From contig NC_135252.1 in assembly GCF_964204865.1 (NCBI RefSeq), positions 3,348,001 through 3,412,000 of the forward strand: a DNA stretch of 64,000 nucleotides, in the 5' to 3' direction. Positions 23,849-41,734 of the stretch are shown one piece after another. The position numbers and the translations under genes were made by a program. The stretch comes from Styela clava (taxonomy: Eukaryota). The notes under the pieces are model-generated. The model was not told the DNA's origin. It saw only the letters and a program-made list of their open reading frames with translations, and did not search any database. Position 1 is the stretch's first letter. Every line of letters starts with the position of its first letter.

Positions 23849-23986
23849 TATAAAAGAGCGGCTAAACGTTCGACCCGATCACAAACTTTAGGCCAGCGGG
23901 CAGTGCGGACACCTGTTCCGCCTCTATCGATAGTAGTCGAACAAGCGAATTTATAAATAGTTAATTTTACGAGTTACAGGCCTGAA
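23849..23986 (+). promoter_or_regulatory. FGF core promoter (TATA box, Inr) and non-coding first exon
   Basis: TATAAAAG at 23849-23856, an Inr-like TCA about 30 nt downstream (23879-23881), a donor GAA|gtaagc at 23986/23987, and a strong polypyrimidine acceptor (tttttttcag) ending at 24516. Confidence 0.6.
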
Positions 23987-24639
23987 GTAAGCTATTAAAA
24001 CAACGATAATACTAGATATGTGAATCGTGCATTGTGTAATATTATTCATGGAAAATACAGTATTTGCGAAAAAGCATTACTTTGACATATGTATTTAGTC
24101 TAAAGTACCAAAGAGACTAACAATGGTGTGATTAGTAACATGAAAGTTTCGAACTGTTGTTTGTCGAAATACGTTGCGACTGACAGAAGATGACCGGTGC
24201 ATTTTCCCATTTACACAGATATGAAATGCAGAAAATCACTGATAAATTTCTGAAAAAAACATAAAAGGCCGGGATTTATCTATCTTGTTGACGGTATAAT
24301 ACAGGAGTAAGCCGAGGCGGCTCCGTTAAGCTTGGCTCTTGATCTCTAATTAAGGGATCAAAATTAATTGAGCGGCCTTGTTTTTAAATTTGTATGAAGT
24401 GCGTAGTTCAAGCAGTATGTGGGAAATATAGTTGAAATGGTCTTTTAATGTTAAAATAATACTTTTTCGCTTATCAAATGGGATATTTAGCTTTCATTTT
24501 TTTCTTTTTTTTTCAGTCAAATCTTAGATTATAAACAACAATTTTAATGTCGACAAGTGTGTTACATGATTGTCTGTGTAGCAGGCTTCATTCATAACAC
24601 GTGCGATTAAAGTCACATATTCCTACGACAAAATATATC

Positions 24640-36999: not shown

Positions 37000-39900
37000 G
37001 ATCACGAATGTAATCTGCGGCTTTTCGTGCGCTGTGTGCTTTTTCTACGTCAGTTCTCGGTAAAGTTTCAGTTTTACCTATAGTTGGGGGAGAACAAATT
37101 TTATCCCACGGCCATCGTTTCCATTCATGCAGAGGTGGCTTAACACCTGCAAAGTGGAAGTATTATAGTTTTATATAAGGGAAAGCAGTGGCTGTTGCAT
37201 TTATTTGTACAATAACTAGTATACTAATTTGGGGGCTTAGAATAATACTTTATTTCGTGGAGTTCCGTAACAGTCTCAAAAAAAAATGTCTTACTGATCA
37301 TGCAATATCCAATAAGTTAATGAGGTCAGTAATTGAAAATTATGTCATATATATAATGTTCATTATATTACTTAATAATCGATTTCTATTTCCTAATTTT
37401 ATAAAAATTCAAATCTTAAGCCTCGCTCACTTTACGACGCTTCAAAATAGATGATTTCATAGCAGTGAAAAAATTTAGCAGTGTGAAAAAATATTACTAA
37501 CATTTTGGGACGTGAATGGTAACTTCTGCTTGAGTCAGGTTTTGGTCACAATCAGGTTACATCAACGTTTCGGAATCAATATATTTAATTTAATGTGAAA
37601 AACTAGATATCTTAAATCTTTTTTTTATCTTTTATCTTTTTTTTTAACTGTGTGGTAAACGGAATGAAAAGAATGTTGGGAGTTTCAATTAACTTGATAT
37701 TCATAAAATATATGAACAATTTAGAAAATTTACCACTTTGTAAATTGAAATCAATAACTTAAATGTCCTAAATGATTTAGTACAATTAGGGTTATCAGAT
37801 TATTATCAGGCATCAGATTTGCAGATGTTTACAGAGTGTATTGGCGAGTAACTAACCGCTCATCCATTCAGAAATTGTCCCGTATACTTCAGTTACAAAT
37901 TCCTCTGCTAATCTGTCGTGTGATTCTGGAAATGCTTCGCGAAATGTCAAGTACACGCATTGGGAAAAGCATCGCGGGTAAACCTAGGAAAAGTGACGAT
38001 CGTTTTCAAAAAATATTTGCCCTCTGCTGCACTCTCACGGTGTCGAAGTAATATTGTTTCACTATAATGGAGTGAAAAATTTTCCTGGGACTAAACTAAA
38101 AGATAAGATTTTCATAGTTATCCCGAGGGAGAAGAAAAGCCGATAAGACGGTTTGATCATAGGACATACCAATGGCTCTCGTCCGGTTACCAGTCCCAGT
38201 CGGTTATGAGATTAGTTGGCCAGTTATTTGTTTCAGGTGCATGGACTTGATGGTGAAGGAAGCCGTATCCGACCAGCGATTACGTGAACCACCCTACGGC
38301 ACGGAGAAGTCCAGCAATCCTCACGCACATAATTACCACCCACGGCATTCGAACCTGTGTACCGGCGCAGAGAATTCAGAATTGCGATAGCATGCCCAAT
38401 CCTAACGTTATCACGATGCATAACCCACTGCGCGAGAAAAAGAGATTGAACACTCGCTTAAACATGTATATAGATGACACATGCATTTCTATCTAGAATG
38501 CACATACAAGAAATAGCGAGTTGAGAAATTCCATCCACCAGAAGTCAGGAATTGAGTCCGAGTCGTTGTGACTCGGAGTGTGTAATCGGGTGTTAATTTT
38601 CTCCTATTTCACAGCTCTGCATCAAACAATATAACATATTGGGTCACATGGTATAAAAGTCTGAAACAAAAAGCAAACCTGGAGAACTTTGTCCCGAACA
38701 TCCAAGTTAACACTCATAAATAACGCAACATAACTATCCGCAATTCTAGTGAAAAGATTATCTTGTGCAGTTGGATCGTGCTGGAAAAGAATAATAATCA
38801 ATCTGATTGGCGCTCACAGCAAAAATTTGGTTTTGAAAAATAATACTAAATGTGATGATGTCTCAAAATCAGGGCTTTGGAGTTTAGCGTTTTATTTTTG
38901 GTTAGACGTCAAAGCTAACATCTTTCCAGTGCAAAAAATTCAGCAACTAGGCGTTTTTTTATGGCTTTGATTAGATTAACCTATTTAGAGTTCTATTATA
39001 GTAGAATGTTAAAAGGGAACATTTTTAAAGCAAAAAGTTCTCTTACTTCGAAATTTTCAAGGAAAAACCACCAAAATGAATCCTGAAGCAGGGCAACTGA
39101 AGCTTCAGACAAAAAAATCTTCTTCCACAATTGACTGAAACCTCTCTGAAAAAAAATGATTCACTTATTATCATAAAATGGTAAATATAAATCACTTCGA
39201 ATAAAAACAACTCTATGAAACCACTCACATTAAAATCTTGTGCCTCTGTAATCTTATTTAGCATCTGTGGAGCTTCAAGTTGACTTGGTAATTCCGTTAG
39301 TTCGTTAAGTCGAAATCCAGGAAAGGTTGCATACTGTAATGTATTGTAAAAAACAAGAGTGCAAATTTTAATTAGATAATTTAACTATTATCATACAATT
39401 TAAGTATTCAACATAAGGAATTTCTATTTAATAAATGTATCATTGAAACTAAAAATGAAGCTTTGGTAAATACCAGTAAATCAATTGTATTTGATATGAC
39501 GGTAATACTAATTGACTGGAACAGTTCGAGAAAAAGAAAAAAAGATTTTTTTTGTACGAGGTGTTTTCTCATATTCACTATGAACAAGGATCTTTATAAG
39601 CAGCCACTCATTCATGAGGAGCTACTTTCATGGAAATACTGGAATCTTGCCGCCTACCCCAATTTTTACACCCTGAATGAGGGCTGTAACTTAAGACTTG
39701 TCACTTGCAATATCAAGATGGCAAAATGGGGGAAAATGGAATTCACTTTTCCCAACGAAAATTAAAGCTCTGTATTTTAAGTTTTCAAGTGAAAAAGAGC
39801 ATTAATTATAAATTTACATCAATATTTTTGCTCCTAGATGCCTGCATAGCTTCAACCATTGTTTCCTTTGCATCTTTCTTTTTCTTTTTTCTACTATGAT

Positions 39901-41734
39901 GTAGGGCAACTGCATCACTATCTGCAGCTTTTTCAAGTTCTTCTGCAAAATTTAAAACTTTTACATATTTATGAAGTTCAAAAGCCAAGAAAATTTTCAT
40001 ATTGTGGAACGAATAATTAGAAAATATGAAAATGGACAAGCTTGAAATCTGGTTTCGAAACAAAGGATAGGTGATTGGGGGATTTCAGAAAATTTGGTCA
40101 ATGGCTATGACCAGACATGCCTTGACATATTGATATCAATATGACATGGTTATATTTTGTCCTGAACAAGGCTCTGCACAATCCATTGCTGGGTAAATAA
40201 CTGATATAGATGGGAAGAAGCAGAATCTTTCCAGTCCGGTATTTCCTACCCAATTCATTATCCCCTGGTTGAGGTGGTGAACAAGGGATTTGAACATTAG
40301 ATTTTAACTTGAGATGACATTGTAGTTGAATCTAACGCTTCAACCACTAAGCCGCCACACCCCATTCACCAATAAATATAGTCTACTTATGAAGCAACAA
40401 ATACAAAGCAAATTAGTAGTTTCTATGAATGTTGCCCATAAGTTTGTGTAAAAGCCTTTTTTAAGTGAATATATTGACAATACTGAATTACTAGCAGTAC
40501 TAACATCTTTATACCTTTCTTAGGAGCATGAAAAAGTTTTTCACGCATCCTTGATGGTAATTCTTCATTAGAGACAATGTAACCAGCAAAAGCATCCAAT
40601 TTCTTTGAAAATTCTTCAATTTGACTTTCAATATTTTCAAGAACATGAATATCAAGGGCTTTAAACATTGCATATAGACAAAAAACATTAAGGATTTCTA
40701 TACATTGATTACTTGATGAGCATTCACAACATAATAACCTACAATGGAAACATTTTTTATCCAATATTCAGTCGTGATTTTTCCGGTAGAATGAGCTACA
40801 TCTTTTGGCATATTTTAGAGTCTGTGATATATATCTGCCAATTAGCAACTAAATAAACTATTAACTTTTGAATGAAGATTTAAAGGATACGGGCCTTTTC
40901 TTTTATTGTTCCTAATATTCCCTCCTCACTCCAAGAACTTGTGCTGATTTCACTGAGATCTAGAGTACCCTCTGAGGTAAGCCTTTGTGGCCATTCATCC
41001 TAAAAATAAAGTATATTCCGTACATTTAATAAGCTAATACATGATGAAGCAGTGCATTAGTATACCAATGACAATCAGTGTCAGATGTAAATATAAACCA
41101 AGTGTCAGCAAATTTGTCTTGAAGGGTGAGAGTTGTGACTGTATCATGTTACTGTCAAAAAAGAATTTTGTAAATACCGGTATGTTCCTGTCGTGAGCAT
41201 ATTCACGTGATTAGACATTTGTGTGTCATGAACTACAGAGATTTTATCACATATTTGTTAGAATTGAGAGATGCAAGAAAACCCATTTATATGCAAATGC
41301 AAAATATAATGTTTTCAAACATTATGGGAAAAAACTCCTTCAAGACCTCAGATGCAATAAAAGCTAATGTTACTCCACAAATTAACTGATTTGTTTCAGA
41401 CCCAGTTTGATGTAAAGATGTTTGATGTGCATGATTAACCAGACCTGTACATGCTTGGCAACAAACAAGTTAAGAATTGTAAAAAATATTTCCTTTACTG
41501 GTAAATTAATGCTTAGTTTGTTTCCAAGTTTCAAACAAATCTGACCATTTAGTCTCAATAACTTACAATTTTTTCTTCACTCAAAAATTCTTCAAATGTT
41601 TCAGCAGGATGTTTTGATTCTTGTTTCGCTGGTGGATTATCAACTTCGTCGTCTAAACTATTTCCCACAGAGGCCATAAGAGCGGCGATACGAGGATCCG
41701 AAAGCGGATCATTTTTTTCACTTGCACCATACAT
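37000..41734 (-). CDS. FAM227B: FAM227B-like (FWWh domain) protein, 5' 9 coding exons (about 375 aa); 3' exons not found in the window
   Basis: Phase-compatible exons 41734-41567, 40999-40891, 40658-40515, 39942-39818, 39333-39229, 39145-39047, 38780-38679, 37983-37857 and 37146-37000, all GT-AG. The translation includes [109 protein letters not shown] and [16 protein letters not shown]. These match vertebrate FAM227B motifs (FLSEASIALLHDSFWWWFL; LFDRISESYVTLFMSI; YATFHEAFPES). The last exon ends in a phase-1 donor (C|gtgagt) with no stop. Confidence 0.9.
38098..38428 (-). mobile_element. tRNA-derived SINE, family S1, near full length
   Basis: B-box-like ggttcgaatgcc in the head and a 3' tail aaatcttatct. 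Homologous to 42324-42489, 44848-44997 and 62611-62943. Confidence 0.65.
40205..40362 (-). mobile_element. Short tRNA-derived SINE, family S2 (related copies near 45155-45265 +, 55735-55866 -, 61778-61925 +)
   Basis: A-box-like tggcggcttagtggtt and a B-box-like motif (tgttcaaatccc), followed by the shared core ccacctcaaccagggg.taat.aattgggtagg. Confidence 0.55.
40659..40890 (-). other. U12-type (minor spliceosome) GT-AG intron in FAM227B
   Basis: 5' splice site GTATCCTTT (U12 consensus RTATCCTTT) and branch site TCCTTAAT (plus-strand 40687-40694) about 30 nt from the AG. There is no polypyrimidine tract directly before the AG. Splicing keeps the frame (KEKAP|LDIHVL). Confidence 0.8.

Follow-up and report, generated by a model that had tools for sequence, protein, structure and literature searches.

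An FGF gene, possibly of the FGF7/10/22 kind, nested antisense in a predicted 55-kb intron of FAM227B in Styela clava: a probable ancient linkage

Sequence trees are unable to settle which of the eight chordate FGF subfamilies the seven ascidian FGFs correspond to, and published trees give low support for the placement of ascidian Fgf7/10/22 (PMC11733497, PMC3420111). The placements of both Fgf7/10/22 and FgfL are ambiguous in ascidians, and FgfL may have arisen by duplication of Fgf7/10/22 (PMC11733497). A nested position shared within an unrelated host gene is a kind of evidence that is independent of sequence trees. In the FGF-evolution papers searched, neither FAM227B nor a nested position is mentioned. 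The locus described here raises the question of whether such a position links an ascidian FGF to vertebrate FGF7. The window analyzed is a stretch of 64,000 nucleotides of the Styela clava genome (contig C3:3348001-3412000), and positions given without a contig name refer to this window. An initial annotation had proposed that an FGF gene is nested antisense in a giant intron of FAM227B, in the manner of human FGF7, and that it belongs to the FGF7/10/22 group.

The 5′ part of FAM227B occupies 36999..41734 on the minus strand and consists of nine coding exons, which begin with the ATG at 41734 and encode residues 1-375 of XP_039267604.2, a stretch that contains the FWWh domain. Exon-by-exon matching to P0011 places these exons at 41734-41567, 40999-40891, 40658-40515, 39942-39818, 39333-39229, 39145-39047, 38780-38679, 37983-37857, and 37146-37000. 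The intervening introns measure, in order, 567, 232, 572, 484, 83, 266, 695, and 710 nt, the same range of 83-710 nt that had been read from the letters. The Pfam FWWh profile (PF14922) matches the three consecutive exons that start at 39145, 38780, and 37983, which cover profile positions 28-61, 59-96, and 92-143, respectively, as expected for a member of this family. Exon 9 encodes the sequence ending in DYIRD and terminates as GAT C|GTGAGT. The open phase-1 donor described at 37000/36999 is thus present, with the GTGAGT in place and a stop codon absent.

The continuation of this gene lies outside the window. In the in-window part of intron 9 (1..36999, minus strand), neither the FAM227 profile nor any of six FAM227B homologues (from Clavelina, amphioxus, mussel, lizards, and gar) found a match, and in the Styela region the homologues match solely the known FAM227B exons. 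This agrees with the earlier statement that 36999 to 1 holds no C-terminal exon. A terminal exon between 36999 and 29625 was considered and rejected, as the interval contains no homologous exon. The search left of the window suggested by the initial annotation recovered conserved exons from 18.2 kb out: six further FAM227B exons, the GPGPDFERVMFNLGGRSPL exon among them, all on the minus strand. The exon following intron 9 is located at −18213..−18327 in window numbering (about C3:3329787-3329673) and is followed by exons at C3:3328592-3328465, C3:3328048-3327889 (window −19952..−20111; the GPGPDF..GGRSPL exon), C3:3326123-3326045, about C3:3324726-3324582, and about C3:3320938-3320828, the last of which contains the stop codon. 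The C-terminal motif exon is also detected by the FAM227 profile (window −19909..−20160, E 1.2e-8), colinear with the upstream part and on the minus strand. Truncation of FAM227B at 37000 was likewise rejected, given the conserved C-terminal exons beyond the FGF gene.

Intron 9 spans 55,212 nt (C3:3329788-3384999), of which the leftmost 18,212 nt lie beyond the window edge. The giant intron that had been anticipated is present in the gene model, and its size was underestimated at "at least 37 kb"; it is roughly 100 times the typical FAM227B intron. Its acceptor (ttacAG) is in phase 1 and matches the phase-1 GTGAGT donor at 36999. The complete exon chain reproduces the 620-aa NCBI model XP_039267604.2 exactly, with canonical splice sites. 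The FWWh part and the C-terminal GPxFxRVxFNxxGxSPL exon are placed in one transcript by the NCBI model and by these phase-matched sites, the 55-kb join itself being based on Gnomon prediction and homology. S. clava FAM227B is thus modeled as a gene of 15 coding exons that covers about 69 kb of the minus strand.

The host is most closely related to FAM227B rather than to its paralogue. Only two FWWh loci are found in the Styela genome, the window gene and an intronless FAM227A-like gene on contig C10. In a maximum-likelihood tree the window gene groups with FAM227B of Clavelina, amphioxus, mussel, lizards, and gar, and the split between this clade and the FAM227A-like clade has 100/100 support. 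Vertebrate FAM227B proteins score 220-234 bits against the window protein and 123-132 bits against the Styela FAM227A-like protein. These sequence comparisons identify the host as an orthologue of FAM227B, not of FAM227A.

The only gene found within intron 9 is an FGF gene, LOC120342725, which encodes 412 aa in three exons on the plus strand (24640-29624). Exon 1 (24640-25540) starts with the ATG at 24640, encodes an N-terminal extension of ~270 residues followed by the ~30 residues that open the FGF core, and ends at 25540 with the phase-1 donor A|GTGAGT. Its translation is identical to model P0043 at 299 of 300 residues, the difference being D231E. Exon 2 (29074-29177), a 104-nt exon carrying the YLAMN core segment, has the acceptor tttcAG and the donor GTAAGT and ends in phase 0. 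Exon 3 (29391-29624, including the stop codon) encodes the C-terminal half of the β-trefoil and a basic tail. All splice sites are GT-AG, and the phases of 1 and 0 around the 104-nt middle exon correspond to the two ancestral core introns of FGF genes. The Pfam FGF profile (PF00167) matches all three exons (positions 3-33, 36-67, and 64-123 of 124), and residues 271-402 of P0043 align to the structures of FGF10, FGF7, FGF9, FGF12, and FGF1, so that an FGF core domain is present. The gene lies wholly within FAM227B intron 9 on the opposite strand: its exons at 24640-29624 (+) are enclosed by C3:3329788-3384999 (−), which bears out the nested antisense arrangement. In a DNA-level search of the genome with the 20 kb that precede the FGF gene, the matches were short interspersed repeats (39 of 13,276 candidates scored). 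Intron 9 of Styela FAM227B is thus predicted to hold an entire FGF gene that is transcribed independently from the opposite strand and is apparently of the FGF7/10/22 kind.

About seven FGF loci are found in the Styela genome. The affinity of this one to FGF7/10/22 is suggested by both similarity and context. Against the PDB, the Styela FGF scores 91 bits with an FGF7/FGF1 chimera, 82.6 with FGF10, 76.6 with FGF20, about 76 with FGF12, 74.8 with FGF9, and 74.7 with FGF7. The best natural matches are therefore the chimera, through its FGF7 half, and FGF10, by a narrow margin. Exon 3 alone ranks FGF13/12 first; the Styela FGF paralogues were compared by exon 3 alone, which is too noisy to classify them. 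A homologue search with the FGF core of P0043 among proteins of 227-721 aa, a range that excludes most FGFs, returned the query alone, and a protein-cluster search returned generic FGF clusters only. The proposed placement in FGF7/10/22 is weakly supported by the scores (82.6 bits for FGF10 vs 76.6 for FGF20). The genomic context, an FGF inside FAM227B, is shared with vertebrate FGF7, the human side being taken from the literature. Like ascidian Fgf7/10/22 (the Ciona gene Fgf3/7/10/22; Satou, 2002 and Shi, 2009, as cited in PMC11733497), the Styela gene is one of about seven ascidian FGFs, and the canonical FGF core that it encodes comes nearest, by a small difference in score, to FGF7/10. The Styela gene is presumably the counterpart of Ciona Fgf3/7/10/22.

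The human locus at 15q21.2 resembles that of Styela in that an FGF, in Styela apparently one of the FGF7/10/22 kind, occupies an intron of the FWWh-domain gene FAM227B. An overlap of the two human genes is evident from rs4338740, which a GWAS table lists as an intronic variant of both C15orf33 (FAM227B) and FGF7 (PMC3580778), and other papers label the locus FGF7-FAM227B. The claim that human FGF7 sits in FAM227B is upheld as regards this overlap; an outright statement of nesting is absent from the literature searched. The two systems differ in that the long N-terminal extension is a feature of the Styela FGF and not of human FGF7. Human FGF7 is on the strand opposite to FAM227B, and human FAM227B spans some hundreds of kb, compared with the 55 kb of the Styela intron. 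The surroundings also differ. The human neighbors are DTWD1, GALK2, and DUT, whereas the Styela DTW-domain, galactokinase, and dUTPase genes are on contigs other than that of the FGF; the Styela pair is flanked by Hobbit/BLTP2 and a Surp+DRY_EERY gene. Because these neighbor families are dispersed while FGF and FAM227B are still together, the pair seems to have outlasted the rest of its neighborhood. In Clavelina, the ENA models CAK8677950 and CAK8677952 each represent one half of FAM227B, the break between them falling at the junction that aligns with Styela intron 9, and their accessions are separated by a single number. This is one indirect hint that a gene lies in the same intron there. 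The Clavelina ENA model has an alternative tail, for which a search of the Styela region gave no match.

The Clavelina annotation can also be read in another way, since it independently called two genes at this junction. The 620-aa NCBI model would be over-joined if the FWWh and GPxF..SPL parts were separate transcription units in Styela on either side of the FGF, and the join is indeed known from prediction and homology. Yet the donor and acceptor of intron 9 are canonical and phase-matched, both parts occur in one chain in all FAM227A/B proteins recovered from other animals, and the Clavelina halves are themselves joined in NCBI models (P0012, P0034). Moreover, a separate start exon is not evident for the C-terminal half, and the Clavelina model for it begins at an internal Met. 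A split host is accordingly quite improbable, the least probable of the alternatives weighed here.

Given an intact host, the resemblance to human might still have arisen by chance, through independent entry of an FGF or its ancestor into a FAM227B intron in tunicates and vertebrates; the host would then say nothing about orthology. Tunicate genomes are heavily rearranged, the FGF7 neighbor families checked are all unlinked in Styela, and the homology of the host intron between Styela and human is a supposition. However, in a genome of 377 Mb FAM227B takes up only about 69 kb, mostly the nest itself, and with about seven FGF loci the rough chance of any falling inside it is about 1 in 1000 or less. 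The antisense orientation is common to Styela and human, and Clavelina appears to have a gene in the same intron. Convergence is therefore unlikely. Equally unlikely is that the nesting is real and old but that the original occupant has given way to Fgf-L, which is specific to ascidians, or to another divergent paralogue. The weak subfamily signal of the Styela FGF, its unusual extension of ~270 residues, and the ambiguity of ascidian Fgf7/10/22 and FgfL in the literature (PMC11733497) would allow for this. On the other hand, the best full-length natural matches are to FGF10 and to the FGF7 half of the chimera, and a swap of paralogues inside the same intron is unparsimonious. Were FgfL a duplicate of Fgf7/10/22, the FGF7/10/22 assignment would hold in any case.

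The preferred explanation, that an FGF of the FGF7/10/22 kind was inherited in its nested position, is given a probability of roughly 0.7 as a whole, and the linkage of FGF and FAM227B is probably ancient. Since the introns of FAM227B (C15orf33) are home to FGF7 in human as well, the nesting may have been present in the common ancestor of tunicates and vertebrates. Any rearrangement that relocated an FGF lodged in the intron would disrupt the host gene, which may be how the pair has stayed together. FGF regulatory DNA probably occupies the 43 kb of intron that precede the FGF start. Conserved microsyntenic pairs and genomic regulatory blocks with a bystander gene, such as fgf20a-efha2, have been described (Irimia et al., 2012, PMC3514665). 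There, too, a developmental signaling gene is kept by or inside an unrelated gene across phyla, and the introns of the bystander are proposed to hold the enhancers of the target; such enhancers in the Styela intron are putative. In contrast to those pairs, the Styela target is physically nested, an arrangement that in itself resists separation.

A broader proposal, which we advance tentatively and hold to be somewhat less probable than its negation, is that FGF7/10/22-in-FAM227B is a regulatory block that dates back to early chordates, or possibly further, and that survived tunicate genome scrambling through long-range FGF enhancers in the host intron. This proposal would settle the orthology of ascidian Fgf7/10/22 and would imply that FGF7, not FGF10 or FGF22, kept the ancestral locus. 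The literature links the ascidian FGF of this kind to notochord extension and metamorphosis, and the 55-kb intron offers a bounded search space for its enhancers. The Styela pair also lends itself well to tests of why nested and bystander arrangements persist. If the nesting is ancestral, the shared host would be a rare-genomic-change marker that ties this ascidian FGF to vertebrate FGF7/10/22.

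Nine exons of FAM227B lie on the minus strand of the window (G000:C3:3348001-3412000 of the 377-Mb assembly; AT-rich eukaryotic DNA, G+C 33-37%), from an ATG at 41734 down to 37000, with introns of 567, 232, 572, 484, 83, 266, 695, and 710 nt. Three of these exons match the Pfam FWWh domain, and over the FWWh exon the identity with XP_039267604.2, "protein FAM227B-like [Styela clava]", is 100%. Exon 9 (37146-37000, -) ends ...GAT C|GTGAGT in an open frame at a phase-1 donor, without a stop codon. This mapping agrees with the initial annotation, which had described a chain of exons with small introns ending at an open donor at 37000/36999, and had proposed that the next intron is at least 37 kb long and holds a whole FGF gene. 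The continuation was sought by three approaches in the 200 kb left of the window, where window coordinates are negative. A FAM227 profile built from ten FAM227A-type proteins detected the C-terminal motif exon at -19909..-20160 (-; E 1.2e-8; '...GPGPDFERVMFNLGGRSPLVAHYL...') and a second downstream exon at -21821..-22021, both of them minus-strand and colinear with the gene. Mapping of the 620-aa NCBI model XP_039267604.2 placed residues 376-413 at -18213..-18327 and later minus-strand exons starting at -19408, -19952, -21877, ~-23274, and ~-27062, with a stop codon at ~-27172. Six FAM227B proteins (Clavelina, amphioxus, mussel, two lizards, and gar) matched only at the mapped exons and had no match in the gap, which is intron 9, and the profile gave zero matches on the minus strand between 36999 and 1; the proposed absence of a C-terminal exon from that interval is thus upheld. 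Intron 9 therefore measures 55,212 nt (C3:3329788-3384999; acceptor ttacAG, phase 1 on both sides) and the coding span 68.9 kb. The predicted 55-kb join rests on the Gnomon model, canonical sites of matching phase, homology in colinear order, and the gene being single-copy.

Intron 9 contains a plus-strand FGF gene of three exons (24640-25540, 29074-29177, and 29391-29624), each with a Pfam FGF match and jointly spanning profile positions 3-123/124. The junctions read A|GTGAGT ... tttcAG and TCG|GTAAGT ... caacAG, with phases 1 and 0 around a 104-nt middle exon, a layout that corresponds to the ancestral FGF structure (PMC11733497). The exons total 412 codons and differ from the NCBI model of LOC120342725 only by D231E; a ~270-residue N-terminal extension (24640-25450, +), with a hydrophobic stretch at about residues 205-225, precedes the FGF core. 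The host donor lies 7.4 kb from the FGF stop codon, and the host acceptor 42.9 kb from the FGF ATG. Other open frames of at least 85 codons in the intron had no gene-like signs in a check made without a Pfam scan. A ~210-bp short interspersed repeat at 22705-22912 has at least 40 copies of 87-92% identity on many contigs; related copies lie near 34117-34239 and at -17505..-17227, and its translation occurs three times inside the intron.

The identity of the host was examined against its paralogue. FWWh loci number two in the genome, the window gene and an intronless gene on C10 whose product shows 100% identity to "protein FAM227A-like [Styela clava]". A maximum-likelihood tree clusters the window protein with FAM227B of Clavelina, amphioxus, mussel, lizards, and gar, whereas the C10 protein falls with FAM227A of sea urchin and FAM227A-like proteins of other tunicates; support for the split is 100/100. 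The C10 gene (G000:C10:12553177-12554886, +) is one unbroken 570-codon frame, as against 15 coding exons in FAM227B, and Ciona, Phallusia, and Clavelina have proteins of similar length; the C10 gene may have arisen as an old retrocopy that took the place of the intron-bearing gene in tunicates. FAM227B intron 12 (1,765 nt; C3:3326124-3327888, window -20112..-21876, minus strand; phase 2) is of the U12-type AT-AC class, with the 5' site CC|ATATCCTTTT, the 3' end ...CAACAC|, and a branch-site-like motif, TTCTTAAT, ~18 nt ahead of the 3' end. Three gar FAM227B isoforms (P0037, P0038, and P0041) read ...KLP-YPS... at the aligned position, as expected from read-through of an ATATCCTT donor, and this minor-class intron may therefore be common to Styela and vertebrate FAM227B.

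A BLTP2-type lipid-transfer protein gene flanks FAM227B on the right, with 12 matching open frames at ~42000-64000 (best E among them 9.6e-16, Pfam Hobbit/FMP27/BLTP2); human BLTP2 is not known to be located close to FGF7. A full-length U12 minor-spliceosomal snRNA gene (48480-48632, +; Rfam RF00007, 97.3 bits, model positions 1-151) sits within this region, ~7 kb from the FAM227B start. To the left (C3:3278001-3320800, stretches L016-L018) are an SFSWAP-like gene, which combines a DRY_EERY domain with two Surp modules, and a retroelement whose 607-codon frame carries a reverse-transcriptase domain (L017:7533-9353, -; RVT_1, E 6.6e-29). Since the families of the human FGF7 neighbours that were checked were not found on C3 (DTW-domain genes map to C13 and C9, galactokinase-type genes to C1 and C19, and dUTPase to C17), no FGF7-region synteny was detected past the nested pair.

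The FGF had been proposed as an FGF7/10/22 pro-ortholog. Scored against solved structures, the full-length model gave 91 bits with an FGF7/FGF1 chimera, 82.6 with FGF10, 76.6 with FGF20, about 76 with FGF12, about 75 with FGF9 and with FGF7, and 63-70 with FGF1. These sequence scores lean toward FGF7/10 by a margin that is not decisive, and exon 3 by itself does not discriminate. Published work likewise finds sequence by itself weak for this placement: Oulion et al. no more than "assume" a Ciona FGF7/10/22 orthologue (PMC3420111), and the name Fgf7/10/22 was retained "despite ... ambiguities with the tree topology" in a 2024 MBE paper (PMC11733497). The Styela genome has about seven FGF loci. 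Two of them, at C2:15075257-15077009 and C2:15135649-15137401 (+), share a strand, are separated by 60 kb, and have exon-3 products 89% identical, so that they look like a recent tandem duplication; tunicate FGF genes have been described as having no two in tandem or close together (PMC13591910).

In human, FGF7 is antisense to FAM227B and located between GALK2 and DTWD1. Documentation of the overlap, to which the initial annotation had pointed, is indirect: a GWAS-catalogue table lists rs4338740 as "C15orf33, FGF7" and "Intron; Intron" (PMC3580778), and other studies use the locus name FGF7-FAM227B. No description of the nesting in an evolutionary context was found in the literature searched, and FAM227B is unmentioned in the FGF-evolution papers examined. 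In Clavelina lepadiformis, FAM227B is full length in two NCBI models (P0012 and P0034), and the ENA annotation has two proteins rather than one. CAK8677950.1 (399 aa) departs from the full-length model exactly where the Styela ...DYIRD|L junction aligns, and CAK8677952.1 (213 aa) corresponds to the C-terminal part; the one accession number between them is consistent with a putative gene called in the equivalent intron. Less probably, an FGF landed in FAM227B independently in the tunicate and vertebrate lineages. With FAM227B occupying ~69 kb of 377 Mb and about seven FGF loci, the rough chance of such a landing is 1 in 1000 or less, and common descent of the nesting is therefore the better reading.

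The two genes are on opposite strands, and frames and splice sites are intact in both. They would be transcribed independently, and the pair may be held together in that a breakpoint freeing FGF would also sever FAM227B. Regulatory DNA of FGF is probably located in the long stretch of intron upstream of FGF, a role that would follow the "bystander gene" reasoning applied to genomic regulatory blocks (PMC3514665). Both genes are already annotated by NCBI, and conserved pairs of the nested or bystander kind have been described before. The nested arrangement in Styela is confirmed and extended, and the evolutionary interpretation of it is plausible, with support in part; on that interpretation, the Styela pair would be a new instance of conserved nesting, of some value for FGF orthology.
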